A stretch of DNA of 64,000 nucleotides from Blastocystis sp. Blastoise (GCA_039096225.1 JBBPEB010000019.1:124001-188000); one strand, 5' to 3'; shown: positions 16,838 to 62,015, numbered from the stretch's first letter. Notes: generated from the sequence alone by a model not told the origin. Translations and numbers: made by a program.

Positions 16838-19800
16838 TTAATTATTTAGAGTAGACCTGAAGACCACGTTCTTAGTAAATATTTCATTACTACTACTAAT
16901 CATCTTACCTTGAGAAACACTATCAACTACCTTAATAAAAAGAGAGTTGAAAGATCGGGCACGACTAAAAGCAACATAGAGTTGACCATGAGAGAAGACA
17001 GGACGATCTAAATAAACACCAACTCTTTCAAATGTTTGTCCTTGAGATTTGTTGATAGTCATTGCGAACGCTAAACGAATAGGAAATTGTCTTCTGGATA
17101 TAATAATAGGAAGATCTTCAGGATTTGAATTACAGATAATTCTTGGAATAATAACAGTACGTTCATCAATAGTAAGAGAAGGAGGAGGATTTAAAATAGT
17201 AGCAGTAATATTATTTGATCCTAATCGAGTAACTATAAGTCTAGTACCATTACATAATCCTTTAGAAGGATTAAGATTTCTTAAAAGCATAATGATACAA
17301 CCTATTTTTAAATTTAATATATGAGGAGGCATTCCAGAAGGTGTTTGAGAATTAATAAACTCGATAGGATAATTTGATTCTGGATCATCTGTTTCAGAAT
17401 CAAGAATAGAATCAGAAGAGATATAAGGAGTAGTAGTTCCAGAAAGAAGATTATCTACAATGAAATCATTTAAAGTACCAACACAATCATTAGTAGAAGC
17501 TAATATAACAGAAGAAGCTAATCGTTTAATATCAGAATCAAGAGAAGTATTGATTCTATGTCCAAATACAGTAACACATAAATCATCATTTACAATACAT
17601 TGAGGAGGAATAGGAATATAATCTATATCTAAATGATGACTAATAGTATAATTATTAGAAAGAACACCATCTCCTACTTGTAATAACCATTGTCTAAAAT
17701 CATCTGCTCCTTCTAAAGCTCTCATATTTCTTGATAAATGAATGACATTATTCTTTATCGAATTCCATAAGGAACAAAACTTTATAGAAGAACTAACAAT
17801 CTGAGCTTGAGTTCCTTTTCTTATAACTGGTAAACATTGTCTGAAATCTCCTCCTAATACTACTGTTTTACCACCAAAAGGAATATCTAATTCTGTATTC
17901 ATTATATCACATAATAATCTATGTACTACCATAAAGCAATCACCTTTCATCATAGGAGCTTCATCCCATATTATTAAATCAGCTATTCTTATTTCTTCTA
18001 CTTTTCTTCTATCTCTAGCTAAATCTATATTTGAAGTAGAATCAGGATCAACATTCAAAGGAATACCAAATTGTTTATGAGCTGTTCTACCACCTGGTAA
18101 TAAAGTAGAAGCAATTCCTGTTGAAGCTACAGGTAATACATTCTTATTATGTCCACGTAAATAACTTAATAAACTATTATATAAGAAAGTCTTTCCACTT
18201 CCACCTGGACCATCTATAAAGAAACATAACTTATCTTCTATTCTACTACTTTCTATTGAATGAATTACTCTATCAAATGCATTTCTTTGTTCTTCATTTA
18301 ATAATTCTATTACTCTATTAGCTTCTTGTAATTCTAAAGTAGGATTATAATTATAATCATTATAATGATGTTGTTCTTCTACTTGAGGTAATCCTAAATC
18401 ATTATAATTCACTCCTATACTTATCATCATCTCTTTTATATCTTGTAAAGTACGTATTTCATAATCTTGAAGAACACTATTAGTATCATCTTCTATAACA
18501 CTTGATGAATCTAAATCTTGAGCTAAAGGAGTATTTATATAATCTATTTCATTATTATGCATTGAATGTTTATAATCTTCACTAAGAAATGATTTAAATC
18601 GAATCCAAAACTCTTTTACATTTGTTAATAATGATTCTGAAATATAAGTAATAAATAATTGTCTCAATTGACATGGAGTAGCAAAAACAATAGCTTCTGA
18701 AAATGAATCAAATACTTCTCTCTCATTATTCAATAATCCTCTTGCTATAGCTGCTTCACTAAAGGTTCTATAAGGTTCATTACGATTCAATCCTTTTACT
18801 ATCTTCAAAGAATCAAAGCTATCAGCTCCTTTCGTATTCAATAATAATAATCTCAAAGCATATCGTTCTTTATCTTTTGGATTCACATAATACATTCTTC
18901 CTAAAGCTTTTATATCTCTCTGACGTCTATTCCAAGTATTTGTATTCGATTTCCATACATAATATTTTGGTATTTCATGATAAGCATAAATAGGATATTT
19001 CTCATCTAATATTTTCAATAATTCTTCTGATATATTATCATCATCTACTTCATAACTATTTATTCTATTTATCTCTTCTAAACGAACTTGAATCAATTCT
19101 CTTTCTTCTTCTACATTATTCATATTACGAATACCATGCTTCTTCTCTATATAATAATAAGTATATATCTTTCTTTGATTCTGAACTTCTTTCTCTAAAT
19201 CAAAGTATTTTGTTAATTTAGTACCTTTCTCTAAACTATTTCTTAATGCTTCTTCTTCGTGTCCTTCTCGAAATAATATATATGGATCATCAGGTAAATG
19301 AATAGGTAATCTATTAATAGAAACAGAATTATAAGTAATTTCAAAACAATTCAAACGATAAGAAGCTTCAGGAGGAGAAACATATCGACAATCTAAATAA
19401 GCTTGAGTTTCATCTACTATTCCATTATCATTCACTCTTCTTAATTGAGCTATCACAGAATCATTTCCTTTTAATGCATATTTATATATATATTTAGTAC
19501 TTTGAATATTACAACAGACTTCTACATTAATATGAGCTTGATATTTCAATAATAAATAAGGATTATAAGGAACTACCCAACGATTATCAATAGTATAAGT
19601 ATTATGACTACGAATAAGAGTAATAGTTCTATCAGGAATATTTCTTCTTTGATATAAAGGATAAGAATTTAAATGACAATTAGTTTGCTCTATATATTCT
19701 TTTGGAAATCTCTTACTACATTTACCTGTTGATCTATCAATACAAACACAATTCGTATCATAATCAGGACCACATGGACCATGAATCATATGTTTCTTAA

Positions 19801-21844
19801 CTAATTCATAAAGAAGAGGAGTTGATTCTTTATCGGGAATCTCTGCACTTATTATACTATCTACTTCATCTTCTGTTCTATATTTAGAATTCGTATCTAA
19901 AATAATTAATATATGAGAATGTGGTAAACCTCTCTTTTGGAATTCTACTGAATATAATAAAGCTTCTACAGTACCAAATATATTCTTATCCTTTATATCA
20001 GAAAGCAATTGTTTCAACTTTAAATGAAACACTCTTGAAACTAAATCTGGAAATTCATTAACAGTATAACCTTCTGGAATATTATTCTTTATTTCTAACC
20101 AATCTGGATTGCAAGTAAATGTAATAAATAAATCAGGTTTACCATATTCTCGAACTACACTCATAGCATCCATATATTTCTGTTGTAAATTTCTTGGACT
20201 ACCAACAAAAGAAGAAGGTAATATAATAGCTTTACCTATTCTATCTATATTTCTATCATTCTCATTTATTTGATCTCCTCTCTCTTCTAACATATTATTT
20301 ATATTCTGATAAGTTGAAGCTCTTAACTTATTTTGATTATTTCGTATATAATTAATTCTATTTTGTTCAACTCGGATATAATTATCAGTAATATATTGTA
20401 AAGTTAATTTCTTATATTTTAATAAATAATTATCATAAGGTGGATTTTTCATTTGAAGCATATAATTATAATATTCTAACATAGTAATAGTAATTTGATT
20501 AGAACGATTCAATGATAATAAATCTGGATACCAACCTTGTCTTCCAGTTGGAAACATAACTGGATAAACCATACAATCTATATATGAATTAGTATTCTTC
20601 ATTACTATATATTGACCTGAAGTATAACGATTCTGTTCATTATTACTATTAGTAGCTACTATTTCCATACCACTTCTAGGAAAACAACAATAACTTCTTT
20701 CTGGCATTACTCCTCCTTCTCTATATTGATATATTACTGCTACTTCATCTACTTGAGGAGTATTATATCTTCTTATATCAGGTACTTCTCTTCTTTGTTT
20801 CTTAAATTCTATTAATAAATTAATATTACTTCTATTCATTTGACTATTCTCTTCTATTACTTCATCTACTCTTTCTCGAAGTGAATTATATATTTGAGCT
20901 AATGGATGATATTCTCTTATTGTACTATCTAATATCTCTAAAATATTTGGTTTTAAATCACAAAAATATCGATTCATACTTCTCATATGAGTAGCTTCAT
21001 CTCCATCTATCATATAATATTGATTGAATACAGGATGTCTTGTAGGATCATTCACATCAAAATCTAAAGCACTCTTAAAAGTATGATATATATTACCTCC
21101 ACATTTAAATAATAAAGGTCCAGAAGAATTTCTTAAATCATCATCAGAAGTATTATTTCCAGCTAAAGAAGCTAAAGCAACAGAATTATTATATCGAATT
21201 ATATTATTAATAAATTCTCTTGAATCTGGATTATCTCTTCTTAATAAAGAACGAATAGTATTAGGAAGATCAGGAAGTTCAGGAAGAACTACTTTACCAC
21301 TACCACAGCAAGTATAAAACTTATCATTCATTCCTTTCTCTAATTCAAAATGTTTAGCATGACAATATTCACAATGAACATTAAAATCACCTAAATAATT
21401 AGCTTTATAAGTATTCAATGCTTCATTTAATACAAAATCACCATGAGAATCTATATAAAATAATATAAAATAAATATTTATATATATAAATACTTCTTTG
21501 AATAGAAGCAATACAATTATGTAATCCAGGATATAATAATCTTTGTTGATTATCTATAAAAATAATTTATTATTTAATTATTTATAAAGAATTATAAAAA
21601 ATAAATAGCATACAAATATCTAAAGCTCTTCTTCTTCCTCTATTAATAATAGGATGAATAATTATATCTTCTTCAACTATAAATAAAATTTAATAAATAT
21701 ATTTAAATAATAAAAAAACATACTATTATCTGTTATAGGTCTTCTAATAGTTCTTACAACTGGTATTTCATCATTATTTTGAGTATTACTATTAATATTA
21801 GGAAAAGGATCAATATAATCAGAATCAGAATCATTATCAGAAAA

Positions 21845-32945: not shown

Positions 32946-35900
32946 TTATATATCTTTCTTAGTATCTTTTTTTACTTCTACTGATATATTCATTGGCTGA
33001 ACAGATTTGGTTGTTACATTAGTTTTTCGCACCAATTTTGATTTTGGTTTTGATATAGGTTTGATTTTCGATTTTGAATGTTTTTTCTTCTTTAAACAGA
33101 AGAATAGAATAATAGCTAGAAGAAGAATTATAATTAAGCAGGATATGCCTATAATAATATAAAGAAGAGAAGAATTATTTTCTATACAACTAATAAGAAT
33201 AGGTTTCGAAATACTTCCCATACTATTACTACATGTAATTATATATCTCTCTATTTCTATTATACTTGTGAATGTACCTTCTATTATTGCTGTTTTACTA
33301 TCAAAAGTAACTCCAGAAGGTAAAGAAGGTTCAATAGAACAAGTATATTCAGCAGCTTGAACATAAGGAATAATCTTAATATGTTGATTGATAACCGCGG
33401 TTATTATTTGTGATTCAAAAGAGATATCACGAGGTGCACTTAATGAACAATAATCTACAAGATCTCCATAATTACCATTAGAACAATATCTACGTTTATA
33501 TCCTTCATAATATATACCACATGATATATAGGAATAACCATAATCTAATGAACCACCATCTTCTTCTGTATAACAACTTTTCATTACTGTCTTTGAATTA
33601 AATGATAATTCAGATAATTGAAAACCATAATTACTAGTACTTCCTGGATATAAACAACTATTTAACGATTCAGCATCATCTAAAGGTTGATTATTACATT
33701 CTGTAACAATATATTTATAATAATGATAACTTTGATCATTAAAGAATGTAAATGTAACACTTTGTGAATAATACGTAAACATATAATCTCCTACAACATG
33801 TAATATAGACCATTGAATACCATCTTTAGAAGCTTCTAATCTCCATCCACTAGGATGACGCACATTACATGAAGGACCAATAGTAATAGTATAAGAAGTA
33901 ATATATTCATATAGAGCATGAGGTAACTCAAATAGAAACATTGCTCCTACACATCGAGGACCAGTAATCGATAAAGTGCCTGCATTATTATCAAATAATG
34001 TTATTATTTGATTTTCATTATCATTAGTATCAATGTCACTTGTTATTGTTCCTTTTAATAAACGTCTATTATTATTCATAATAGGATATACAATACAATC
34101 GAAATCATTATTATTCATCTCTTTAGAAGATCTATGTAATTCTATTCCTATTATATTATTACCTGATTGTAATGTATTATTATTAATACTAAATGAACCA
34201 CCCGAGTATTGACTTTCTATATATTCACTTAGAGCATATGTAGTTCTAGTTATAATTCCATTAGGCATATTATATCTATATAATTCATGTCCATTTATAT
34301 ATACAACTACACCAATTGTACTTTGCACTTGTATATAAAATGATGAAAAAAGAGATAATGATGATAATTCTAATGTATATCGATAATATTCTGTAGCACT
34401 ATTTAAAGCAGGAAATGTACCTGCTTTCCCTTCTATCCAATCAGATACATCATATTCTATAGTCAACCAATCATCATCAACATAATTACCTCCTGAAAAT
34501 AACCATATACTCTGTTCTAATGAAATATAAGCACCAAAATATAACTCTTTAATAATTTGACCTTTTCCTCTTTCTATTCCTCCCTTATATAATAATATAT
34601 CTTTATATAAAGAAATGGATAAAGATCCTTTATTCCAACCTAATCCTATTTGATCATATATACTTATTGTACCTTGAAATGGCTCTTTACAAATTGAATA
34701 TATATTATTATAATTTGATAAAACTTTATTATATTCTAATATAGTAGATCCATATATAGTATTAATTTGAAATCCTTGATTTTCTCCATTTGATCCACCT
34801 AACATTTCTATAAGGAATCTTTGATTTGGTAATATACATTCTTTTATAGTTAAATTGATAGTAGTTGAAGATACAGTACCATCTGGTTTAGTAGCAGTAA
34901 TAGTATATTGAGTCTTAGATAAAGTAGTAGTAGGTGTTCCTAGAATTACACCTACTGAAGAATCAAAAGTTAATGGAGAAGGTAGAGAAGGACTTATAAT
35001 ATAATTACTATAATATATAGAATTCGAATAGATTGTTGAAATAGGCATATTTATATATCCATATATATTTGAAGGAGAATAACTTAAATCATTAACATTG
35101 ATATTATCTATATTTTCTGATAAAAATTGAATTTCAGAAATACCTAATTGATAAGGTATAGAATTAGGTTTATAAGTAGATGTAAATATAAATATATAAT
35201 ATCTCCATGGATGAGGATTTGTAGGAATATAAAAACATTTCTTTTGACTTCTAAATGAATAATGAACATTATTTACAGAAGACAAATCATTAAAATCATT
35301 ACCGTTATCACTACCAAATAAACTCCAAGAAGAAGGATCAGAATCTTCACTATTTGTACCACTTATAATACAATATTTATTTATATATTCACTATGATGG
35401 CTACCATAATAAAATCGAAATACTACACTAGAAATAGAAGGTAATTCAACAATACAGTCTTCATTTGATTTATAATCAAATAAAGCATTAATATTAGATG
35501 CTTCACTACTAACACTTGTACTAATATCCCAACTACGAGAGATCTCATTGGACAATGTCATCATTATCATTGTTAAATCGAAATCTATTGGGCAAGTTGT
35601 ATTTAACTGCCAATTAAATACACCAACAGACAAAGAATTTGACCCTGAATGTACATCTCGAATAGGTAATGTTATAGTAAACCATTGAGGCATGGACTCA
35701 CTTGAAGTGGGTCTTGTAAAGATATTTAATGTTCCTGTAGGTAGAGAAAAACGATAAACTTCTTTATCATTTATATAGATAATAAATCCGTTACGAGCAT
35801 AAATACGTATCATATATGAAGAAAAAGTGAGAGAAGAAGGAATAAATGACTTTTTAAATAACCAAACAGTACTTGTAGCAACATGACTAGAAGGAGTATA

Positions 35901-38900
35901 TAAAGAAAAAGCTACACCTTGAGAGTTACTTGTATACCATGAAGAAGAAATAGCTCCTTGAGCATAACTCCATGCACTCTCTTTACTTTTAATAGTTGCT
36001 TGAATATTAACTTTATATTGAACATAAGCAGAATCATATAAATATAATTGTTGATATAAAGTATATGCATCATCAAGTTTAATATATATATATAAATAAG
36101 AACCATTACTCCAACCATCACCTAAAGAATCTTCTAAAGTAAAATATAATAAGGAACTACTAACACACATAGTGGTCGTATATTCACGGTTATCTTTATA
36201 AGATGGAGAAGAATAAAGAATATTCCCAGAAATATCACTTACATAGAAACTTTCTTCTCCAGCCCAAGAAGTTGTCTTCTTTACAAGTTTTATTAGCATA
36301 CTACTTGTTTCACATTCTATATAAAGATAATAGGAATATTGTATATATAAATATAGTTTATTAAAATAATAATTAATGTTATTTTATATATATATAGAAA
36401 ATAATAATAAATATAGTAAATAATAAATAGAATGAATTATATTTATATTATATAAAATAAAATAAAATGAAATAAAATAAAATAAAATAAAATAAAATAA
36501 TTAAAATAAAATAAAATGAAATAAAATACTAAATATAATATTGATATAATAATAATAATATACCATGAAATGTTAATATAAATTGATAATTTGCAGGATG
36601 TACATCATCATCATATTTATATGCTGAAATGACACAAATAGCAGTAACAGCTGTATTGGGCATTCCTTCAATAGTACCACTAACAGGGTCAATAGAGAGA
36701 CCCGTAGGAAGAGAAGGAGAGGAAGAGAAGGAAGTATATCCACTAGAAAGAGGACTCATTACAATTGGGTCTAAACTCACATAACTATTAATAGTATTCC
36801 TGGCATACCACAGTCCCGCGGAAATAGGATCATAATTACACGGTAATAACTTAAAGGAAGAAAGAGCAAGAGAAGAAACTTTAGAGGATGTACCTATAGA
36901 AATATACATATATATATAGCATATATTTATTATTATTATATTATATTATATTATATTATATATATTATATTATATATACTAATAACAAGTTTAAATCGTT
37001 TAAATGATACTGTATTCGATCGTAAGGAGAACATAGCTGTTTGAGAACGTTCGGAAAACACAAATCCCTCTCGATAATCCAACTGGATCCATCCTTCATT
37101 AATTACATCAGTGAGATCGTCAGACGTACCATATTGACTCCCATATAATGTCCATGTTTGAGGATCCCCGTGGGAATCATCAGGAGAATTTGTTAATGAA
37201 TATGAATTCACCCAATAAGCTCTATATATATTTATTTATTTATATATAATGAATAGTTAAACATTAAAAAAAATATTAAAAATATATATATATATATATA
37301 TATATACTCATCATTATTAAATGTATATTGAATAGTAAGAACACGTCGAGTACTATAATAATACGTATAAGTTGTTCCATCGAATATTCGATCACATCCA
37401 TAACCAGGTGACGCAGCTGTCGCTGGAACACAATTATAAGTTCCTCCAACAAGCACTGAATATCCACATTCTATATATAGAATAATTAATTAATAATAAT
37501 AATAATAATAATATATATATATATACGTGAAGATTCTTTAATAATGAACATGGCTGCAACATTAAACTCATCCATAATTCGATAATCATTCGGATCCCCG
37601 TGGGAATTTTGGTGTACTTGAATTCCTAAATAGCCCACAGAAGTTGTTGTAACGAAACTCTTACTAACTGAAAACCTATATATGTTTATATATAATATAT
37701 AATATATAATATATAATATATAATATATAATATATAATATATAATATATATATACTTATGTATAGATGTCTCTGTTGAAGGAGCAAAAGAAGAAGCAGTA
37801 CTCCATTCAATTGTACCTCTATATACAATTATAATATAATTATAATAAAAAAATATTATTATAATTAAAAAAAATAATAATACCTATAATAATAATAAAA
37901 AAAAAGCATTATCATAATTATAATAAAAAAAAATTATTATAATAAAAATAATAACAACTATAATAACAATAACTATAATAATATACATAGGTAGATGTGT
38001 GCGATAGACTTCCCGTCCATTAAAATAAGCTAAAAAAGGGAATTTAGTTTTAATAATAAATATAATAGTAGCCAGTTCATTTAATTCGGGTGTATTCAGT
38101 GAGATTATATAACTTCTAGAAATATCGGTCATTATAGGTAATTCATCCGGTAAACCACTGTACCATGAAGAACTTACACGGTTATACCATGTACTTGAAT
38201 AAGGATCACCATCTTTATAATATACGGAAGAACCAAATTCAACATCAATGTTTACTATTTATATATATAGATTATTTAAAAAATATTAATTAAAAAATGT
38301 ATTTATATATATATATATTATTTAAATAATATTATTTAAACAATATTATTTAAATATATATTATTTAAATATATATGATTTATATATATTATTTAAAATA
38401 TTATTTAAATATATATTATTTAAAATATTATTTAAATATATATTATTTAAATAATAATAATAAGCAATATAGACATACCATTAAAAATTTCGGAGGATAA
38501 ATAGACATATTTTCCTACTTGATAAGGCATTGTTGTTCTTAAGAGTAAGACTCCATAAAGATAGAACGATAGCAATGAAGGAGAAGTCTCAGAACCCCAA
38601 CCGTTTCCTTCACTATATATAGAGAATATATGATTTTAAAAGCAAGTAATGAATTCATACGTATCTCGCATGAGCACAGTATGTTGACCCTCTTCTGTAC
38701 ATATATGCCAAATTCGAGTATTTTCATTATCAGTAAGATTTCCTCGATATGAAAATAGCTTGATACCTACGGTTGACGACCCTTTCCAAATCTCAAACAT
38801 CTCCGACGTTGCATTCTGTGAGAAGTCTTTTCTTATTTCTACGTCAAATAGGGACGGGTCACATGCAAAGATTACTAAAATAATTAATATTCATATAGAT

Positions 38901-45214: not shown

Positions 45215-45728
45215 TTAATTTTTGTTACTATTCATTTGATTCATAAATTCTTCTATTTTTTGCATCTAGAAATATATAAATTAATTGCTGTGAATATTTA
45301 GAAATACGAAAAGAGGATCTTTGCGAGCACATAGTTTGACATCACTCACGTTGATTGTGCTTCGTTTTCCGTGTGTAGCAAACATTTCAAGATCTTTCGC
45401 ATAGGATTCTAAAAAAAATATTAATTTTATTAAATGTTTAATTACCAGAGTAATTCATTAATAACTCACATAAAGTGGCAACAGCCTATTTTTATACAAT
45501 TAATCAATCATATTTTATATATACATCTCTCGTAACAGTGAATCCATTCTTTTCTCCTATATAATACTGCTATTAAACAAGAAATTAAAGTCAAAATTAC
45601 CTTCTTCCTCACAAATTTTAAGAATTGTGAAATAAATAGAATTCTTCAAAGACTATAGATTATAATAGGTCTGGTAAAAATCAATTATTTACTGTCATCG
45701 CTTGAACATCTTGATTTGTATCTGTCAT
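45215..45728 (-). CDS. CENPS: CENP-S / MHF1 histone-fold protein (6 exons, absent from the ORF track)
   Basis: Spliced product reads SLKNSIYFTILKICEEE...YAKDLEMFATHGKRSTINVSDVKLCARK. Five canonical introns. Confidence 0.88.
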
Positions 45729-46125
45729 TTTGAACAATAAATTATTAAATAGTATATATATTATTATGTAATACTTAAATCAATGATTTAATTTAAATAA
45801 AAGCTAGAAATAAATATTAAAAATCAAATCAATTCTTTTCAGAAAACAATTTATATACAGATACTAGAGAGGATTTATTTTCAGAATATTTCAAGAAGAA
45901 TTCCAATAATATTTCTGAAATGAAAACTCTAGAGTTTCTAGGATTTTCTGTTTTTCTCCATAAAGAAATAAGAGAAATCCAGGGGGTCATGTAAAATGGT
46001 AGCTTTCTATTATTTTTCCTTGTGTAAATGAAAACTTAGGGGTTGTCGAGTTTTTGACAAAATGTTTTTATTTTTGGAAAGGCAATATATATATATTGTT
46101 GATATTCCCACCTACACAATTTAAT

Positions 46126-47261
46126 ATGGCTACTGCTAACGATATTAAGTTATTTGGCAAATGGTATGAGATGATTCACTGAATATTTTTTAAATATGAA
46201 TAATTATCATTAATATTATTCTTTAACTGTCAATTAAAATGATTTTTTCTTACTTTTATATTCTATTGGAGTTTCGAAGGAATCGAAATTACCGATATGG
46301 CTGTTAAGGTATATATATTTTTTGTGTTTATTTGTAATTAATTGTATATAGGATCACATTGCTGCTCATCCTAAGAACGCTACTTATCTTCCCCACACTG
46401 CTGGTCGTTATCAACTCAAGAGATTCCGTAAGGGTCAAGTATGTGATTTTTTTTAATTATTTATTGTTATTTTATTAGTTTTTTTTTATTATTTGTGTTA
46501 TTTTAATTATTATTCAATTAAATATTTATATATTAATCCATTATAATGTCCTCTTGTTGAAAGACTTGCTAACTGTCTTATGTTCCATGGTCGTAACACT
46601 GGTAAGAAACTTAACGCTATGAAGATTGTTGAATCTGCTTTTGATATCATCAACCTCATGACCGATAGAAACCCCATTGAAGTATTTATTTTTATTATTT
46701 ATTATTGTTATTATTTATTATTATTTATTATTGTTATTTATTATTGTTATAATTTATTTATTATTATTTATTTATTATTATTTATTTATTATTATTTATT
46801 TATTATTATTTATTTATTATTATTTATTTATTATTATTCATTTTCTATATTCTTCTTCTATAGGTCGTCATTGATGCCGTTATCAATGCTGGTCCTCGTG
46901 AAGATTCTACCCGTATCGGTAGTGGTGGTGTTGTTCGTCGTCAAGCTGTCGATGTCTCCCCCTTCAGACGTGTTTCTTATGCTCTTAGTCTTCTTACCCA
47001 AGGTGCATGTATTTTATTTATTATGTTTATTTATTAATTTCTATATCATTATTGTTTCCTAATATATATATATAACACAATATAAATAATTAATAATAAT
47101 TCTATATATATAAATGTGCTCGTGAAGCTTCTTTCCGTAACCTCAAGTCTATGTCTGAATGTTTAGCTGATGAACTCATCAACGCTTCTAAGGGTTCTTC
47201 TAACTCTTATGCTATTAAGAAGAAGGATGAAATTGAACGTGTTGCTAAGGCTAACCGATAA
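46126..47261 (+). CDS. RPS5: 40S ribosomal protein S5 (uS7), 6 exons
   Basis: IKLFGKW...PHTAGRY...CPLVERL...[10 protein letters not shown]...RRQAVDVSP...[30 protein letters not shown]. Exons 46126-46163, 46269-46308, 46352-46438, 46547-46681, 46864-47002 and 47116-47261. Confidence 0.97.
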
Positions 47262-48117
47262 GGGCTCTACCTTATACAGATATTTATATATTTATTTCTT
47301 ATATATATTATCTGTATTAAAAGGAGGTGTGGTGGTCTCCATTGTTTTTATCAACGATAATCCAAAAATAGATATCCATCGTTTTGTTTTTCATTTTTTT
47401 TTTATTATTCATTTTTCACTTTTTTTCATATTATTCATTATATGTCATTTAAATTTTTTTTTTTGACTTTGAAAAAACATTGCCTTGTTCATATTTTATG
47501 GTTATTAAAGAATAATGAAAAAAAAACAATAATAAGGCAAATTGTGAAATAAAATGAAAGTCAAACAAAACAAATGACGATAATAATTATTAAAACATTA
47601 AACTACTAGAAAAAAAATAAATTGTTATGTTCTCATTCCCTCAGAATAAGTCCTCAAAGAGTAATCAGTACCGAAAAAAAATAATCATTGAACATAACAT
47701 TACATAATAATAATAATATATATATATATAAACTTTCACTTACTAGAATACATTAAATTCACTATGACAATAGCATAATTATCACGTCACAAACATTTTA
47801 TAAACAAGAAAGATTAAATAATAAATAATGTCAAAAAAGGATTGAAGAGAAACAAATCACATCAGAATCAAAAGAATGACATTTCTCTTAAACACTGGAA
47901 ATTACTAACACACAACAACCTTGGATTGACTCAATAAAGAAAAGAGATTCGGATGTGTAAAACCATGAGAATCACAATTATTCTGATACCTTTCTTTTTT
48001 GCTGACAATTGTTGAAATCATATTCAGTTCCGAACGAAAATTCATAAAAATAATTTTGTTTTATAAAAAAAATTGTTTTATTATTTGTGAATTATTTCCA
48101 AATTGAATTATTTAAAA

Positions 48118-48856
48118 ATGTTAAAGAGGTAATTAAATAAAGTATTGAATCATTTATCTGCGTAGTCATATTTCTCCTTCTGTTTTATCTTCCGATTTCT
48201 CTCATTTAGCTGAAGAATCAAATAGAATGCTTTCTGTATATATTCTTGTTTGATTAAAAATATATTGTATAACTATTATAGAGTGGTGCTGACTGGATTC
48301 ATTTAGATGTCATGGTATGTTTTCATTATTTTGTTTTTATTCATCCTTTATTATTATTTATTTTATCTATAGGATGGGTAAATTATATCATACAATCAAT
48401 CATAATCATTTTTTGTAGACATTTTGTTCCTAATCTCACTTTTGGTGCTCCTGTCATCAAATGTTTACGTAAAAACTGCACTGGTTTCTTTGATTGTCAT
48501 TTGATGGTTGAGAATCCTGCTTTTTATATTAATGATATGGCTAAAGCTGGTGTCGATCAATTTATATTTCATGTAGAAGCTGTAGGTATGATTTTATTCA
48601 TTATAAATATATTATTATGAATGTTATTTATGAATATTTTCTTGGGTAAAATAAAATAATTAGTTTCTTTTTATAATATAATAATTATATAATAATTATA
48701 TAATATATATATATATCTTCTTCTTATAGAGAATGTAAAGGAAGTCATGGAAGCTGTTAAAGCTGCAGGAATGAAAGTAGGTCTCGCTGTTAAACCCAAT
48801 ACTCCCGTTGAATCTGTATTCCCCTTTGCTAAAGAACTGTATGTTATTGTTATTAA

Positions 48857-54110: not shown

Positions 54111-57100
54111 ATGCATCAGTATTATTTGCGTACTATATTGTTTGCTTATCTGTTCTGTGCATTCTTCTGTATATTACATGTGATCTACAATGTTTATATA
54201 TATATAATCTATAGTAAATCTTGTTTCTGGGGAATGCAGCAATGGTACAATACAAGTAACTATTGTTAGGCATTATAAGAAACAGTGCAATTCAGAATTC
54301 ACTTATTTGTATAGTGGTTACCCGAATAGACTTGTTCAAATAGCTGATTTTGAAAGCCAAGATGGTTGTGATATTGATGTGAATCGAACATTATGCTTAA
54401 AACAAGAATTATATATGTTTGATGTTCGACAAGAGTATTTAATATATATTTATTGATAAGAATCATTTTTTTAAAATTATTTATGATTGTTTAGATATAT
54501 ATGTATATTTTATGCTTCTTTAGAAACGGATTAGGTTGGTATTCAGGTAGCTCATTAGATGTATATATTGGTGACTTTTTCATTTATCACAATTATTTAA
54601 ATCGAAAACAATCAGACCAATGGTTTTTTTATCGTATATATTATTATTATTTTATTATTATTTTTTTTATGTAATTTTTTTTCATATTTTTTCTTTCTTT
54701 TTGGTTATTATTATTATTATTTATTTTTTTTAATATTCTGTCTTTCTTTTCGTTTATTCTTATTATTATATGATTATTTTTGTTCATAATTTATATACAT
54801 TTATATTCCATTTTTTTAAAATTAACTAGATATACATATATATATTTCTAATTATCTATATCCATATATATTAGTTTTTTATAATAATACTTATATATAG
54901 CATATTATTTGATATCTGAGGTTTCTATATGGAAAATGACAAGTACTCGTCAATATGAAGTGACTTGGTATTCTACTACTTATAATGATTCTTCATGGAC
55001 TAATTTGATTTCCAATACACAATTTCGTTTTCAAGCGATTACTCAATATTTTCGATATTCATTTCTATTAACAGATTTACCTTCAGGTCTAAATTTTTAT
55101 AATTTCTTCTTTTATACTCAATATGGATATGTAATATATTTTAATGGAGATGAAGTTACTAGACGATATATTAACTCAGGACAAATTATTCATCCTGATT
55201 TATATTCTCCTCAAAAAGATACAACTTCACAAATTCAGTCAGTTTCAGGCCGATTATTAAATCATTTTTCACTTAAAGGATTCAATTCGATAGCTATTGA
55301 AATTCATATATATCAAGGAGAAGGAACTCCTTCATGTATATTCAATCCTTCTATGTTTTTATTATATGGTGAATCCTTATTAAGATCTTCTTCTTCTCTT
55401 CTTCAACCTGTAGATACATCTATTGATACTACTAATTTTAATAATTTATTAGATGAAAACTTATTAACTTCATGGAAATGTACTTTATATAATAATAATT
55501 GTATGTTAAAAATTCAATTTCCTGAAAGACACTATGAGTTTATTAATTCCTATTCTATTACTACTTCTCAAGATCGAGATACTTCTGATCCAATGGATTT
55601 TACTTTATATGGATCTACAAATAATCAACAATATATACCTATAGATATAAGAAAACATGCTGGCTTTCAAGGAAGAAATGAAGCCAAACAATTCTTTTTA
55701 TTTTCAAATATAATTCCTTATCGTTATTATCGATTCGATATTCATACTAAATCTGGCGATTCAGACACGATTTCTGTAGCTGAATTTGCTTTTTATTTAT
55801 ATGATTTATCTCGACTTAGTGTTTTAAAATATTCTAATGATAATATTATTGCTTATAAGGATATAGATACATTAGAAATAGCACCTATGACAGCTGGATT
55901 CTCTAGTTATATATTTGATAGTTCTCCTTTCTCTTTACCCAAAGGACTTTCATATAATAGTAATACTGGTATTATATCCGGTATTCCTGAATCTCTATTT
56001 AATAATACTATTCGAATATCAGCAATTAACCAACAACTCTATACTACTGATACTACTTATATACATCTTGCTATTATTACATGTGAAGGACCTAATATGT
56101 TTTATATAAATATATCACAAGTTATACAAAATAAAACAACTAATGATGAATATTATAAACTTTATATACCTCTTAAAGATCTCTATTTGAATTATAAAGA
56201 CTATTCTTTTACTTCTATTTTTAATCAAATAACTAATACTAGTGAATATTCCTTATATTATGATTCTACATGGACTTCATATAGTCAATATATCTATTCT
56301 ATTGAAAATATACATACATCCTTTTCATCAACTATTACAGAGATTCTTATTAATAATAATAATACAAACTCTACCAGTAATAAGAATTATCTTAGAACTA
56401 CAAATACTCTCTTTTGTGTTCCTTCTAATTTTTATATTATTCAATTAATTGATCGAAATGCTGATATTTGGGCTACTTCTTCTTTTATTACTATTTCTTA
56501 TATATCTACTAATGATGAATATCCTCTTTTTAAATCTACTTTATATCATACAGAATCTTCTTCTTATCTACTTCATTTAAATTTCAATGTTTTTACAAAG
56601 AATCGAAATACATATTGTTATAATTCTTTAGTAGATATCCCTCCTTCTTCGTGGTATACACCTAATTATTCTATTGATTCTTCATGGAAATCGTGTTTAT
56701 ATGATGATGATTCTACTATATTAAATACAAATAATCATTATATGATTAGTAAATTTCATATAAATCATAGTCTATTATATCAAAGTGTAGCCATTCGTTT
56801 ATATTCAATGTGTAATGTAGATATGTATTTAAATGGATACTCTATATATACTATTCATCTTTGTTCTCCCAATAATACTATTTCTATAGATACTTCTACA
56901 GATATATATTCTTATCGAACTGTGCATATTGATAGTTCTTATTTAAGAGAAGGAGAAAATACATTAGCTATACATGAACAAATCAATACTACTCAAATAA
57001 ATAATATATCACAAAGAAATCATTATTATTATTATCATAATACTAAAGAAGAATATAATAATAAGGATTCAACAATATTAAGATTTCGTTATACTGTTCT

Positions 57101-60100
57101 TTGTTTATGTTCTTCTTCTCATTCTTCAAGAACAATCAATTCACTTATTTATTCACCTGTTTATGACTCACCAGATCTCTATAATTTAATTGATAAAAAT
57201 TTATATTCAAGTATATTTATATATGAAAATAATATAACATCGACTACGGATATCTCTTCCAAACAAATAGTTGAATTTCCCGTGTTTATTGAGACAAATA
57301 TTCCTTCTTCTGTAGAGTATATGAATCGATATTGTATACATAGTGCTTATTTGACTCATTTTCATCAATTCTTTACTATTACTGTATATGGTTGTATGTA
57401 TACATCAATAAATACAACACTTTCAACGATAGAACCCTATAGAAATAATACTACTATTCAATGTATATTAATTGATACAGTTACTAATATTACATTCAGT
57501 CCATTCAATCATTTATATTGTCGACATATTAATAGTCATTCTATATCCTATACTCTATATAAATTTATTATATCTACTGAAAGTATAGCAACTTCATTAT
57601 TCTTTTCATCCATGTCACCTTCTAAAGAATCTCCATTATTCTCACTATCTGAAATTGGCTTATATTCTCTGAATTTTGCATCGATTCTCATAAGTCCTCT
57701 CTCTTATCCTTATAGTAATGTGATTGTATATCGTTTCAATGAAATCTCAACATTAATTCCTTCTCCTTACTATAGTCAATTCTATATAGAAAAAGGAATA
57801 TTACCAAAAGGTCTCTCTTTAGATTCTACTATGGGATATATTACTGGTACTATTCTAGATTCTCTAGGTAACTATACAATAACTATAGCTGCTTATTCTA
57901 TTGAGAATCAACTCATGTATACTACATTATGTATACAAGTAATTACTTGTGACTCTCCATTTGGATCATTGTTACTTCAATTTAAAAATATACTCTATGA
58001 TTCTTCTCCTCTTTATTCTTTTTCTATTATTAATAAAGAAGGTATTTCGGTAGTACATCAACCTTTTGTTGATGCTTTCTTTGCTTCCTTTACATATTGT
58101 CTTCCTTTTAATAGTTATATATTAATATTAGAAGATGAACAAGGGTTAGGATGGGGTAAAACTACAGTCAATCTATATTTAAATGGAAAATACCCATTAG
58201 GGAAATATAGTATTGGATATCAACAATATATAAAAAAGATTCCTTTTGTAATTAGTGATTCTATTGATTTCTATAGTACTTCCTGGACATTTCGTGTCAA
58301 TAAATCGATTCCTCTTCCTCTTAATAATGATTGGATGATTTCTGAAGAGGCTCCTTCTGATTGGACATTAGGGACATTATCATCTATTTCTAATTATGAA
58401 GATATTACTCAATATTTTCGTACTACTTTATATATTGTTGATTTATCTCAATTTATTGGATTATTCTATAATATATATACTACTTGTGGTATAATTCTAT
58501 ATATAAATGGAATAGAATTAACTCGTATGAATATGCTATTATATGAAGTTATTCAGTATAACACTCCATGTTTATTATATTATGAAGATGGAGAAGAATA
58601 TAGTCAATCTATATATATATCAAATATGAATGATTTCTTTCATAATGGAAATAATATTATTAGTTTTGAAATGCATGGATATACTATAAATACTATCAAT
58701 AATCTCTTGGATTTCGATATATATTTAATTTATGATTCTATAGATAGAACTCCTTTAGGAAGTGTTATAACTAAAATGTCTTTGTTACCAGGATATGATA
58801 CACGTTACTTAACGGATGGAACACAATTTACAAAATGGAAAAGTTATCGTGGGAATATTTTTGATAATATAATTACATTTAAATTTGATTCGAATATATA
58901 TGAATATATTACTACTTATAGTATATCAAATACTTATGATTGTAATAATATGATACCTTCTGGATGGTTATTATTTGGTAGTAATGATGATAATCATAAT
59001 TTAGAATTATTATCTACTGTTCAGAATCATTATTTCACATCTTATGGTGATACTTCCTATTTTAATATTATTATCCATAAACCTTATAAGTGGTATACAT
59101 TCTTTTTTAATGAATTTCTTAATAAAGAAATTGATACTACATATACTATATCGAATAACAATAAAACAAATGATTCTATTGTTGTTCCTTTATATGATTA
59201 TCAATCGGATATTCCATCATTCATACCTCAAACAAACCCTCAATGTACATTAAACAATCTTATTCAATTATCTTCAATTCATTTCTTTATAACAAAACCA
59301 AAAACTTATTGTAATTCTACTTCTGATGGGTATATTGCTGTTGCTAATAATACTTATAGTTATAAAATGTGTGATTCAAGTCATATAGGGTTTAAAAAGA
59401 GATTATGTATAGATGGAATATTTCAGGAAGAAGATTCTTCAGATTGTCATTTAATTCTTCCTACAGATTTCTATTATTATGAATATATATTAACATTACT
59501 TATGACTTCTCCTTCTCTATATCTTACTCCTCATTATAATGGTATTAATCTTACGTTCTATAGTGTTCCTACTCTTCCTAATGGACTTCGATTAGATACA
59601 TCTACAGGTATTATATCCGGTATAGTCACACAAGAACAATCTTTAAAAACATATACTATTACTGCAGAAAATGATATTGGATCTATATCAACCGATATAC
59701 ATATTCAAGTACTCACTAATAATCATGATATATATTGTGACATAGATGGTCTTTGGCCACGATCTACTATTGGTTCAAAAGTATACTTACAATGTGAATC
59801 AAGTGAAGATACGGGATCTTTATATCGTTATTGTACATATAGTAACAATCAAGGAATGTGGTTAGCTCCTGTTAATAATTGTTCCAATCCATCAAATTAC
59901 GTTTCATTCTTCTATATATCATCAACTGCATATATTCTACTCAATCATACTGTTCAAATCTCTCCAATAACCACAGGAATTATCACTAAATGGTTTTTAT
60001 CTCCTTCTTATTTACCAAAAGGTATTAATTTCTCCAATGGAAGTTTCTCTGGAATTCTACATGAATTATTAAATAATATAACTTATTATATATTTATATA

Positions 60101-62015
60101 TTCTCATGAGAACTATTATTCTCAATCATTAACTTTAGTAACATTAGAGAAAGGATGTATGTCTGATGATGAATGGCCTATTATACCTATTAATATGGAA
60201 TATTCTCTTCCTTGTGAATATCCCAATAATACAGGATCTATCACTAGACGATGTGAAGATAATCACGGGAATGCGCAATGGGGTGAAATCCATAATACTT
60301 GTCATTCTATTCCTCCTCAAATCTCCTATAGTATAGAATGTCTATATTATGTATCTCATGTCTATTATGTATTCCCTGTGGTTTGTATAGGAGATTGTCA
60401 ACGTTATACTATTTCTCCTGATCTTCCTTCTTCTCTTCATTTTAACGAACATACTGGATCTATATTTGGTATATTCTCTACTCCTGTTAATTATACAACA
60501 TATACAGTTACTGCTTATGGTCCATATTTTCATAGTTCTACTACTTTCTCTTGGACTGTTCTCTATATATCTTGCTTACAAGAGTTGAATTGGCCTGAAA
60601 CACTAAAAGGAGAAACTGCACAAATTCCTTGTACAGACCCTCTTAAAGATGGAAATATGTCTCGTACATGCAGTGACACAAATCCTGCTTATTGGTTAGA
60701 ACCTTTATTAGAATGTACATATAAATATCCTTACGTTCATTATACTTCTGAATTATTTTATGTTTATCTTGGATATAATACAAGTATTATTCCTATAACA
60801 CAGAATTATATTCAAAATTGGACTATTGTGCCTTCTATTCAGGATGGTCTTCTATTTAATACGTCGAATGGAGCTATTACGGGAAGTCCAAAGTATAATT
60901 TACCAAGTATATCCTATAGAATTAAGGCTAGTAATATTGATAGAGTAACTACTATATATTTATCGATAACATCAACTGATTTATTTTGTGATGAAGATAA
61001 TGATTGGCCAGTTACTTCTATAAATCAAACTACATTTATTAATTGCCCATTACATACTCCTGGGTTTATTACTAGAGATTGTCTTCCTAAAGAAGATCTA
61101 TCACAATCAATTTGGAAACAATATAAATATAAATATATATCTTTTTCTAGTTTTTATGAATATGTAATAAAAGAATATAATTATTCATTACAACAACATC
61201 CCCACGGGAATAAAGACAAGCAAATGAATAAGGATACTATATATAAGAATAATGATATATATAAATTGAATAATGCATTCACTAAGAATATATCAGATAC
61301 AATTATATATAGATCTTTTGCCCAAGGAATATGGGCTTCTTCTATACATAATAATTGTTATAAACAAGATTTTATTGATATACCAACAAACGGATATCAA
61401 TTTGTGTTTATTCCCGTGATTATCTCTACTTCTTATTCAATGACATTAAATGCGATGAATCTTGGTCATTTATATATGTCATTAGAAGCTATACTTTATC
61501 AATTATCCGTAGATTATATTAATTTAAGGATATATTCAGTAGAATCCAATAAAACGAATTTTCTTGCTAATTCAACTGTTACTTTTAAAGTTTCTATTTC
61601 TCAATACAATATACAAGATACATTACATAATATCACAGAAGCTATGGATTCTACTTATTATTTTCTAGTAGCTATTTATAATATTCATGATTATACAGAA
61701 TGGACATTTCAATTTCCTTCTATTTCTGTCATTCCAATATCCAATATATTTCGATATATTTTTGAGCATTATTTATTTATCTATATAATATCAATCCTAT
61801 TACTATGTATATTCTTATTCTCTATTATATATTTCCCTTATAAAAGATATCAACGTAAACAATTAAAACTCAATAAATCTTTAAGAAGAAGGAAATCAGT
61901 ATATGTCTCACAAAATGATCTTGGAATTATGCTTACAGATATCCATGAAGAACCTCATATTCCCGCGGGAGATCCTTCTCCTCCTACGTTTTCTGAATAT
62001 TTCCATCTTTTGTAA
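54111..62015 (+). CDS. Very large (~2500 aa) single-pass surface protein with discoidin-like, putative Ig and HRM-like Cys modules
   Basis: Three short 5' exons (signal peptide MHQYYLRTILFAYLFCAFF) splice into a 7.1-kb exon. Repeated LP.GL.....TG.ISG and C....WP......C....G...R.C.....W.....C motifs, and a C-terminal TM segment. Confidence 0.83.

Follow-up and report, generated by a model that had tools for sequence, protein, structure and literature searches.

The RPS5 locus

The analysed DNA, here called the window, is a stretch of 64,000 nucleotides (C1:124001-188000) from the assembly of Blastocystis sp. Blastoise, a tortoise gut isolate; the assembly comprises 33.3 Mb in 34 contigs, with a GC content of 23%. 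Direct reading of positions 45600-47700 outlines a gene for the ribosomal protein uS7/RPS5, made of six exons, which occupies positions 46126-47261 of the + strand. Its exons and introns are reported in Table 1, along with the other features mentioned in the text. Positions preceded by a contig or locus name are external to the window. The window also contains a Helitron transposase and two very long intronless frames, listed at the end of the table.

Table 1. Location of the RPS5 exons and introns, of the alternative splice paths and of the other features described.
Feature	Position	Strand	Description
RPS5 exon 1	46126-46163	+	12 residues and TG of a Trp codon; matches the N-terminus of P0180 and of Blastocystis ST1 uS7 P0154
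RPS5 intron 1	46164-46268	+	GTATGA...CTATTG (GT..TG); direct repeat TGG at 46162-64 / 46267-69
RPS5 exon 2	46269-46308	+	G of Trp and 13 residues
RPS5 intron 2	46309-46351	+	Canonical, GTATAT...TATATAG, 43 nt
RPS5 exon 3	46352-46438	+	29 residues
RPS5 intron 3	46439-46546	+	GTATGT...TTATAA (GT..AA); exon end CAA, intron end TAA
RPS5 exon 4	46547-46681	+	CPLVERL...NPIE, 45 aa
RPS5 intron 4	46682-46863	+	Canonical, GTATTT...TCTATAG, 182 nt, low-complexity
RPS5 exon 5	46864-47002	+	VVIDAV...SLLTQ and G of a Gly codon
RPS5 intron 5	47003-47115	+	GTGCAT...ATAAAT (GT..AT); direct repeat GTGC at 47003-06 / 47116-19
RPS5 intron 5, alternative register	47005-47117	+	GCATGT...AAATGT (GC..GT)
RPS5 exon 6	47116-47261	+	GT of Gly, then AREASFRN...AKANR; stop TAA at 47259-61
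In-frame GT-AG alternative, intron 1	46164-46271	+	WS replaced by C
In-frame GT-AG alternative, intron 3	46439-46606	+	20 residues lost, CPLVERL...NTGK
In-frame GT-AG alternative, intron 5	47009-47127	+	AREA replaced by AS
Micro-exon GATGG	48373-48377		Ribulose-phosphate 3-epimerase; D and G of DVMDGHFVPN; flanks TCTATAG and GTAAAT
Duplicated segment	45216 to at least 48767		RPS5 and epimerase gene; corresponds to G000:C21:957198-960773
Second RPS5 copy	G000:C21 about 958000-959400 (L006 800-2340)		Same three non-AG ends
Intronless RPS5 of a relative	L015 1-1197		ENA ERZ13405082, NODE_97614, coverage 325; TAA stop
SCS-alpha gene	G000:C3 about 1221700-1223280 (L017 1427-2994)	+	Five introns without AG
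CCT-beta intron	G000:C34 about 195432-195531 (L032/L046)	-	8-nt flanking repeat GCTAAGTT
Actin-related gene intron	G000:C16 about 1089223-1089314 (L012)	-	7-nt repeat TTATATA
Organelle-genome fragments	L002 52-3318 (G000:C12); L001 (G000:C9)		nad5, rps7, rps12, nad3 in a row
Helitron transposase	16838-21511	-	1557-aa open frame with Helitron_like_N and PIF1 helicase domains
Intronless frame	32946-36299	-	Very long, with He_PIG Ig-like repeats
Intronless frame	54909-62015	+	Very long, with He_PIG Ig-like repeats; larger of the two, also with a hormone-receptor (HRM) domain

The AG that terminates U2-type introns is lacking in introns 1, 3 and 5, which end by TG, AA and AT (or GT), respectively. 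These coordinates and ends, contained in the original prediction, are borne out both by the direct reading and by a second copy of the gene, described below. Also in line with that prediction, the dinucleotide AG is entirely absent from intron 5; it occurs once in each of introns 1 and 3, far upstream of the end. Intron 5 may be read in two registers, two bases apart, generating identical mRNAs. The donors of the three introns (GTATGA, GTATGT and GTGCAT/GCATGT) fit the host consensus GTAT[AG]T, obtained from 22 canonical introns. GC content is 34-49% in the RPS5 exons and 5-17% in the introns.

The RPS5 model was compared, exon by exon, with Pfam and with solved structures. Exons 4, 5 and 6 match the Ribosomal_S7 profile (PF00177) at positions 21-59, 61-104 and 107-148, with bit scores of 35.9, 33.9 and 48.6 (cut-off 24). 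On the solved 40S uS7 chains (204 aa), residues 1-45 of exon 4 align end to end with residues 66-110, and residues 1-47 of exon 6 with the C-terminal residues 158-204; exon 5, with its 46 codons and the split Gly codon, exactly fills the space between them. The contiguity of the Pfam positions and the end-to-end structural alignments indicate that the junctions reported in Table 1 leave no gap in the protein.

Two resemblances among the odd introns had been pointed out in the original prediction. The first, similar length, does not hold in the second copy, whose intron 3 exceeds its counterpart by about 50 nt. The second, the string TCAATTAAA found in introns 1 and 3, was considered as a possible signal, but is one of the two 9-mers that they have in common, a number at chance level in sequences with 10-17% GC. 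The possibility that introns 1, 3 and 5 are copies of a single element was also discarded: they align through their AT-richness only, and are otherwise unrelated.

A second copy of the gene

A second RPS5 copy, whose possible existence had been raised in the original prediction, was found on contig C21. All three non-AG ends, along with the surrounding bases, are identical in the two copies. Across 585 exonic bases there is a single difference, the synonymous change at 46935 in exon 5; in the introns, 29 mismatches are found over 531 aligned bases, and 73 further columns are indels. Every coding base that is used only by in-register splicing is kept in both copies. Seen at the sequence level, this is the behavior of exons, as defined here, under strong purifying selection.

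The duplication covers both RPS5 and the adjacent epimerase gene, for at least 3.5 kb and with 95-96% identity; it corresponds either to a segmental duplication or to a divergent second haplotype. RPL3, EF1A and actin are likewise present in two near-identical copies each.

In a PF00177 search of the whole 33.3 Mb assembly, the window and C21 copies are the only cytosolic-type uS7 genes. The two other uS7 matches are organelle-encoded, and adjoin nad5, rps12 and nad3. The fragments where nad5, rps7, rps12 and nad3 lie in a row (Table 1) fit the genome of the Blastocystis mitochondrion-related organelle.

The odd ends might be seen as artefacts, generated by base errors in the assembly or by the decay of both RPS5 copies into pseudogenes, and the genome is indeed rich in AT and in repeats, its assembly being based on long reads (PMC12129017). 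The presence of the same ends at 3 of 3 sites in the independently assembled C21 copy, however, rules out an assembly error, and a short-read polishing tool is cited among the references of the genome paper (PMC12129017). Decay, in turn, is at odds with the purifying selection acting on the exons and with the lack, in the genome, of any other cytosolic uS7 gene. The same feature, moreover, recurs in other single-copy essential genes, always with a repeat at the junction, as described below. Overall, an artefact appears extremely unlikely.

Public gene models

Two NCBI proteins of Blastocystis sp. Blastoise are exact matches to the RPS5 exons: P0160, from a 420 kb contig, and P0180, from a 1.15 Mb contig. 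P0160 is 126 aa long and begins at a Met located inside exon 4. P0180, 171 aa long, reads FGK-C-FEG, KGQ-KLNAMK and TQG-AS-SFRN, and uses the AG at 46270-71, the AG at 46605-06, and the GT at 47009 with the AG at 47126-27. The effect of each path on the protein is indicated in Table 1. According to the original prediction, the AGs flanking intron 3 would lead to stops; the in-frame path 46439-46606 contradicts this statement. For introns 1 and 5 the in-frame AG had been described as costing conserved residues: this is confirmed, but one of the two alternatives available for intron 5 had been overlooked.

The spliceosome could be using the nearest in-frame AGs, to give a 171-aa uS7 devoid of WS, of 20 residues of the N-terminal helices and of two residues of GAREA, or else a mix of isoforms. 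Paths of the GT-AG type that keep the frame do exist for 3 of 3 introns, and coincide with model P0180; in addition, the annotation of the genome, performed by STAR, StringTie, BRAKER3 and Mikado, favours models with RNA-supported introns (PMC12129017). On the other side, the residues dropped by P0180 have gapless counterparts in all the solved uS7 chains, and are present both in Blastocystis ST1 and in an intronless relative. The 75 bases skipped by the public model are identical in the two copies, although divergence at the rate of the introns would have produced about 4 differences, and the GC content of the skipped segments is exon-like, 41.7-58% against 5-17% in the introns (41.7% in the first 60 nt of exon 4, skipped by P0180 and identical in both copies). 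Finally, the two near-identical copies have been assigned unlike models (126 and 171 aa), a discrepancy that speaks for ab initio prediction rather than for RNA support. Use of the nearest AGs is accordingly regarded as distinctly unlikely. Both public models, forced through GT-AG at the expense of conserved uS7 residues, would share the same error, as judged from conservation.

The genome paper describes three tortoise isolates, with genomes of 26.0-33.3 Mb, 21-23% GC, longer introns and canonical stop codons, and does not mention non-canonical splice sites (PMC12129017).

Ancestry of the introns

The RPS5 gene of the human-associated Blastocystis ST1 NandII carries GT..AG introns at the codon positions of introns 1, 2, 3 and 5, and none at that of intron 4. 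The corresponding junctions are compared in Table 2, where a slash marks the border between exon and intron. For intron 5 the GC..GT register is shown, which places it at phase 0, where its ST1 orthologue lies. The occurrence of GT..AG introns at the equivalent sites of ST1 indicates that the odd RPS5 introns are old spliceosomal introns, which have lost their AG.

Table 2. Junctions of orthologous RPS5 introns in Blastocystis ST1 and in the window.
Intron	ST1	Window
1	AAATG/GTAAGT...GTGTAG/GACC	AAATG/GTATGA...CTATTG/GAGT
2	GAAG/GT...GTAG/GATC	TAAG/GTATAT...ATATAG/GATC
3	CCAG/GTGGGC...CCTAG/TGCC	TCAA/GTATGT...TTATAA/TGTC
5	GGGT/GTAAGA...GATAG/GCTC	AGGT/GCATGT...AAATGT/GCTC (GC..GT register)

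Each of the odd RPS5 introns ends by the same dinucleotide as the exon upstream of it: for introns 1, 3 and 5, exon end and intron end are TG/TG, AA/AA and GT/GT. At the same positions ST1 features TG/AG, AG/AG and GT/AG.

An intronless RPS5 is found in a GC-richer relative, represented in a metagenome (Table 1). It reads without interruption FGKYSFEG, KGQCPLVE and AQGARASSF, and likewise FGKYSFEGIEIK in correspondence with exon 2. Its flanks are conserved with the window both upstream and downstream, for example around 47630-47680.

Introns of the same class in other genes

Introns lacking AG were also found in other genes of the same genome. In SCS-alpha, AG is missing from the junction required by homology in 5 of 5 introns, whose direct repeats are GC, TGT, AAAATCGGTAT (11 nt), GAATGGGT (8 nt) and ATG. 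One intron of CCT-beta, a single-copy gene, may be read as GT..AA, CT..AG or GC..TA, none of which is GT-AG. In an actin-related gene one intron has a good TCTAG acceptor, but a GT donor is present in no register.

The frequency of such junctions was evaluated in an unselected sample, where genes were not picked for the presence of non-AG introns and junctions were inferred from the Pfam matches of the exons. In nine CCT/Cpn60 genes 29 of 30 junctions are canonical, with consensus GTAT[AG]T...TATATAG, the exception being the CCT-beta intron described above. The EF-Tu and actin families feature 11 canonical junctions out of 12 (one of them uncertain, because of a Cys where relatives have Gly), the non-canonical one belonging to the actin-related gene. 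All 7 junctions are canonical in the RPE gene next to RPS5, including those of a 5-nt micro-exon. The base rate of non-canonical junctions in this sample is therefore 2 out of 49, or ~5%. No introns are present in the matched regions of RPL3, EF1A and EF2.

The presence of the same introns in SCS-alpha, CCT-beta and the actin-related gene shows that they are a property of the genome, rather than of RPS5. The original prediction had proposed a relaxed or regulated recognition of the 3' splice site, possibly connected with autoregulation of ribosomal protein genes. Of this proposal, relaxed recognition is the part that best fits the comparative evidence, as a putative genome-wide trait and not as one specific to RPS5.

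Autoregulation of ribosomal protein genes by splicing is established in yeast. A similar device may be imagined here, where weak acceptors would leave most transcripts retained or mis-spliced, and a regulated fraction would yield functional RPS5: three weak sites fall within one highly expressed gene, and the yeast precedent comes from other genes of the same kind. Against this reading, introns of the same type also occur in SCS-alpha, CCT-beta and the actin-related gene; RPL3, EF1A and EF2 are intronless in the matched regions; and no conserved structured element or motif is common to RPS5 introns 1, 3 and 5. Nothing links such introns to ribosomal protein genes in particular. A regulatory role of the weak acceptors is very improbable, and ribosomal-protein autoregulation is not supported.

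Repeats at the junctions

All the non-AG introns examined carry a direct repeat of 2-11 nt at the junction. In the eight introns measured, the repeats are 3, 2, 4, 4, 3, 11, 8 and 3 nt long (3, 2 and 4 nt in RPS5 introns 1, 3 and 5); 22 canonical introns average 1.68 nt, and controls with a shifted acceptor 0.56 nt. For RPS5, the repeats and the finding of the same three ends in the C21 copy speak against a chance occurrence. Repeats of the non-AG introns are longer than either by the Mann-Whitney test (P = 0.001 against canonical introns, 1e-7 against shifted controls). Most members of the class (8 out of 10) start with G[T/C]ATG or GTAT, which correspond to the host donor consensus. Pairing between the 5' and 3' ends of the introns is no better than in shuffled sequences, with a mean z of -0.40, compared to -1.07 in canonical introns.

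The constant presence of repeats raises the possibility that junction repeats are used by a machinery other than the spliceosome, or at another level, either through a euglenid-like pathway or by repeat-guided excision from DNA or RNA. Besides the 2-11 nt repeat found in every non-AG intron examined, this may be suggested by the 7-11 nt repeats of some members (in SCS-alpha, CCT-beta and the actin-related gene), by the absence of GT, in any register, from one member, and by the similarity to the nonconventional introns of euglenids, which also carry direct repeats at the junctions and are removed by an unknown mechanism (PMC4770533). Most members, yet, start with the host donor consensus, and those in RPS5 are located where ST1 has canonical introns; their ends do not pair better than those of canonical introns, and repeats of 2-3 nt are too short to act as guides by themselves. 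Removal by such a machinery is, on balance, unlikely.

Other known processes were considered, and most were discarded. U12-type introns are not compatible with the three RPS5 introns: the donor [A/G]TATCCTT is absent, with no CC at positions 5-6, and the branch site TCCTTAAC, expected 10-15 nt from the 3' end, is represented only by a CTTAC in intron 1, 16 nt from the end, nothing being found in introns 3 and 5. Hairpin or inverted-repeat ends, of the kind described in euglenids and Amoebophrya, were not found by duplex energies. Editing of A to I could help to restore AG only at the AA end, not at TG or AT/GT, by reasoning alone. Programmed ribosomal bypass, suggested by the TGG...TGG arrangement of intron 1, does not agree with gaps of 105-113 nt, which start with the donor consensus and occupy former intron positions. 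Loss of second-step factors is not indicated, as the genes for Slu7 and Prp18 are present in the genome. As to ciliate-type IES, germline-limited sequences that are cut out of DNA between short direct repeats, the Blastoise introns do have repeats at the junctions; the standard stop codon and the identification of the organism as Blastocystis make a ciliate origin moot.

Transcript data

Matches to a 1.5 kb stretch around RPS5 were found in five sequencing runs. In those of RNA type, among which is a poly(A) gut metatranscriptome, the share of sampled words that is represented amounts to 0.27-0.30. The expected share was estimated as 0.33-0.41 with all five introns removed, and as about 0.6 with introns 1, 3 and 5 retained; this is a weak hint of removal, as divergence between strains could mimic the observed value. 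No transcript-derived protein of Blastoise is present in the protein collection, where only the two NCBI models and proteins of relatives were found. An exact pattern from exon 4 gave 0 matches in metagenomes, and in a protein-based scan identity did not exceed 64%.

Discussion

The described analysis suggests that RPS5 introns 1, 3 and 5 are probably real nuclear introns, derived from GT..AG ancestors by loss of the AG, and that they belong to a minority class characterized by repeats at the junctions. Ordinary GT..AG introns, still found in ST1, would have lost the terminal AG in the tortoise lineage. Their removal exactly at the junctions of Table 1 would generate the only cytosolic uS7 that this genome can encode, from an mRNA presumably joined at non-AG junctions. 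The strong U2-type donors make the major spliceosome the most likely agent of removal, picking the 3' cut without an AG; either the junction repeat, or a TATA-rich tract close to the intron end, may help to place it. The hallmark of the class is a short direct repeat across both junctions, in which the last bases of the intron copy those of the upstream exon, and/or its first bases copy those of the downstream exon.

A more radical reading is possible, and is put forward tentatively. The 3' end may be specified by a match with the terminal bases of the preceding exon, rather than by AG: this is suggested by the comparison with ST1, relative to which the ends of exon and intron seem to have changed in concert. 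It would amount to a new mode of selection in the second step of splicing, or to a repeat-guided, non-spliceosomal excision of former spliceosomal introns. The actin-related intron on contig C16, which does not have a GT, fits a purely spliceosomal reading poorly.

Few signals in eukaryotic gene expression are as invariant as the 3' AG of U2-type introns, which solved spliceosome structures explain by its pairing with the first intron base and with the branch adenosine. No spliceosome is known to carry out the second step regularly at TG, AA or AT/GT when the intron begins with G.

Introns of Blastocystis ST1 are 98.3% GT-AG and mostly 30 nt long, with GC-AG, GA-AG and AT-AC minorities, and a GT donor combined with a non-AG acceptor falls outside the categories described for ST1 and ST7 (Gentekaki 2017, PMC5608401). 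The Blastoise introns resemble those of ST1 because they reside in the same gene, share the insertion points of introns 1, 2, 3 and 5, start with a GT or GC donor, and presumably rely on the same spliceosome. In contrast, the AT-rich RPS5 introns of Blastoise span 43-182 nt, and the ends of three of them are TG, AA and AT/GT. The literature searched contains no account, for Blastocystis, of introns that combine GT with a non-AG end or are flanked by repeats. Variable 3' dinucleotides are also a trait of U12-type introns, and the lineage does have a minor spliceosome, ST1 containing 250-350 U12-type introns, mostly AT-AC (PMC10639083, PMC5608401); the Blastoise donors GTATGA, GTATGT and GCATGT, however, do not conform to [A/G]TATCCTT.

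Among other eukaryotes, the closest analogues are found in tunicates, euglenids and Amoebophrya. In the tunicates Fritillaria and Oikopleura, introns without the usual terminal dinucleotides are handled by the major spliceosome (PMC13326754; Henriet 2019, through PMC7789003), a precedent which shows that AG is not indispensable in chemical terms. In these tunicates, however, non-canonical introns form the majority, and alterations of U1, U6 and U2AF have been proposed, whereas in Blastoise only about 5% are involved, donors are GT or GC, and a junction repeat accompanies each case.

With the nonconventional and intermediate introns of euglenids the Blastoise introns share variable non-GT-AG borders and direct repeats at the junctions; euglenid introns, though, have no complementarity to U1 and a stem which joins their ends (PMC4770533), while U2-type donors and no extra pairing of the ends are observed in Blastoise. 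The odd RPS5 introns, furthermore, are old, and not lineage-specific gains. Introns of the dinoflagellate Amoebophrya feature direct repeats of 3-5 nt over the boundaries and no fixed dinucleotides, and standard annotation fails on them as well; they are, however, introners organized in repeated families, with inverted repeats of 8-20 nt, in a genome where more than 60% of the introns are non-canonical (PMC7789003). In Blastoise the odd introns are a small minority, do not contain inverted repeats and, for the three RPS5 introns compared, are unrelated in sequence.

Pipelines restricted to GT-AG appear to have mis-modelled genes in the public genome: with about 5% of the introns affected, many models are probably wrong, and comparisons of gene content involving tortoise Blastocystis may need to be rechecked. 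If the proposed interpretation is true, Blastoise would offer a tractable system, being a culturable protist with RNA-seq, a high-quality genome, and relatives that retain the ordinary form of the same introns; its study could show how a spliceosome picks a 3' site without AG, and the role played by the repeats at the junctions.
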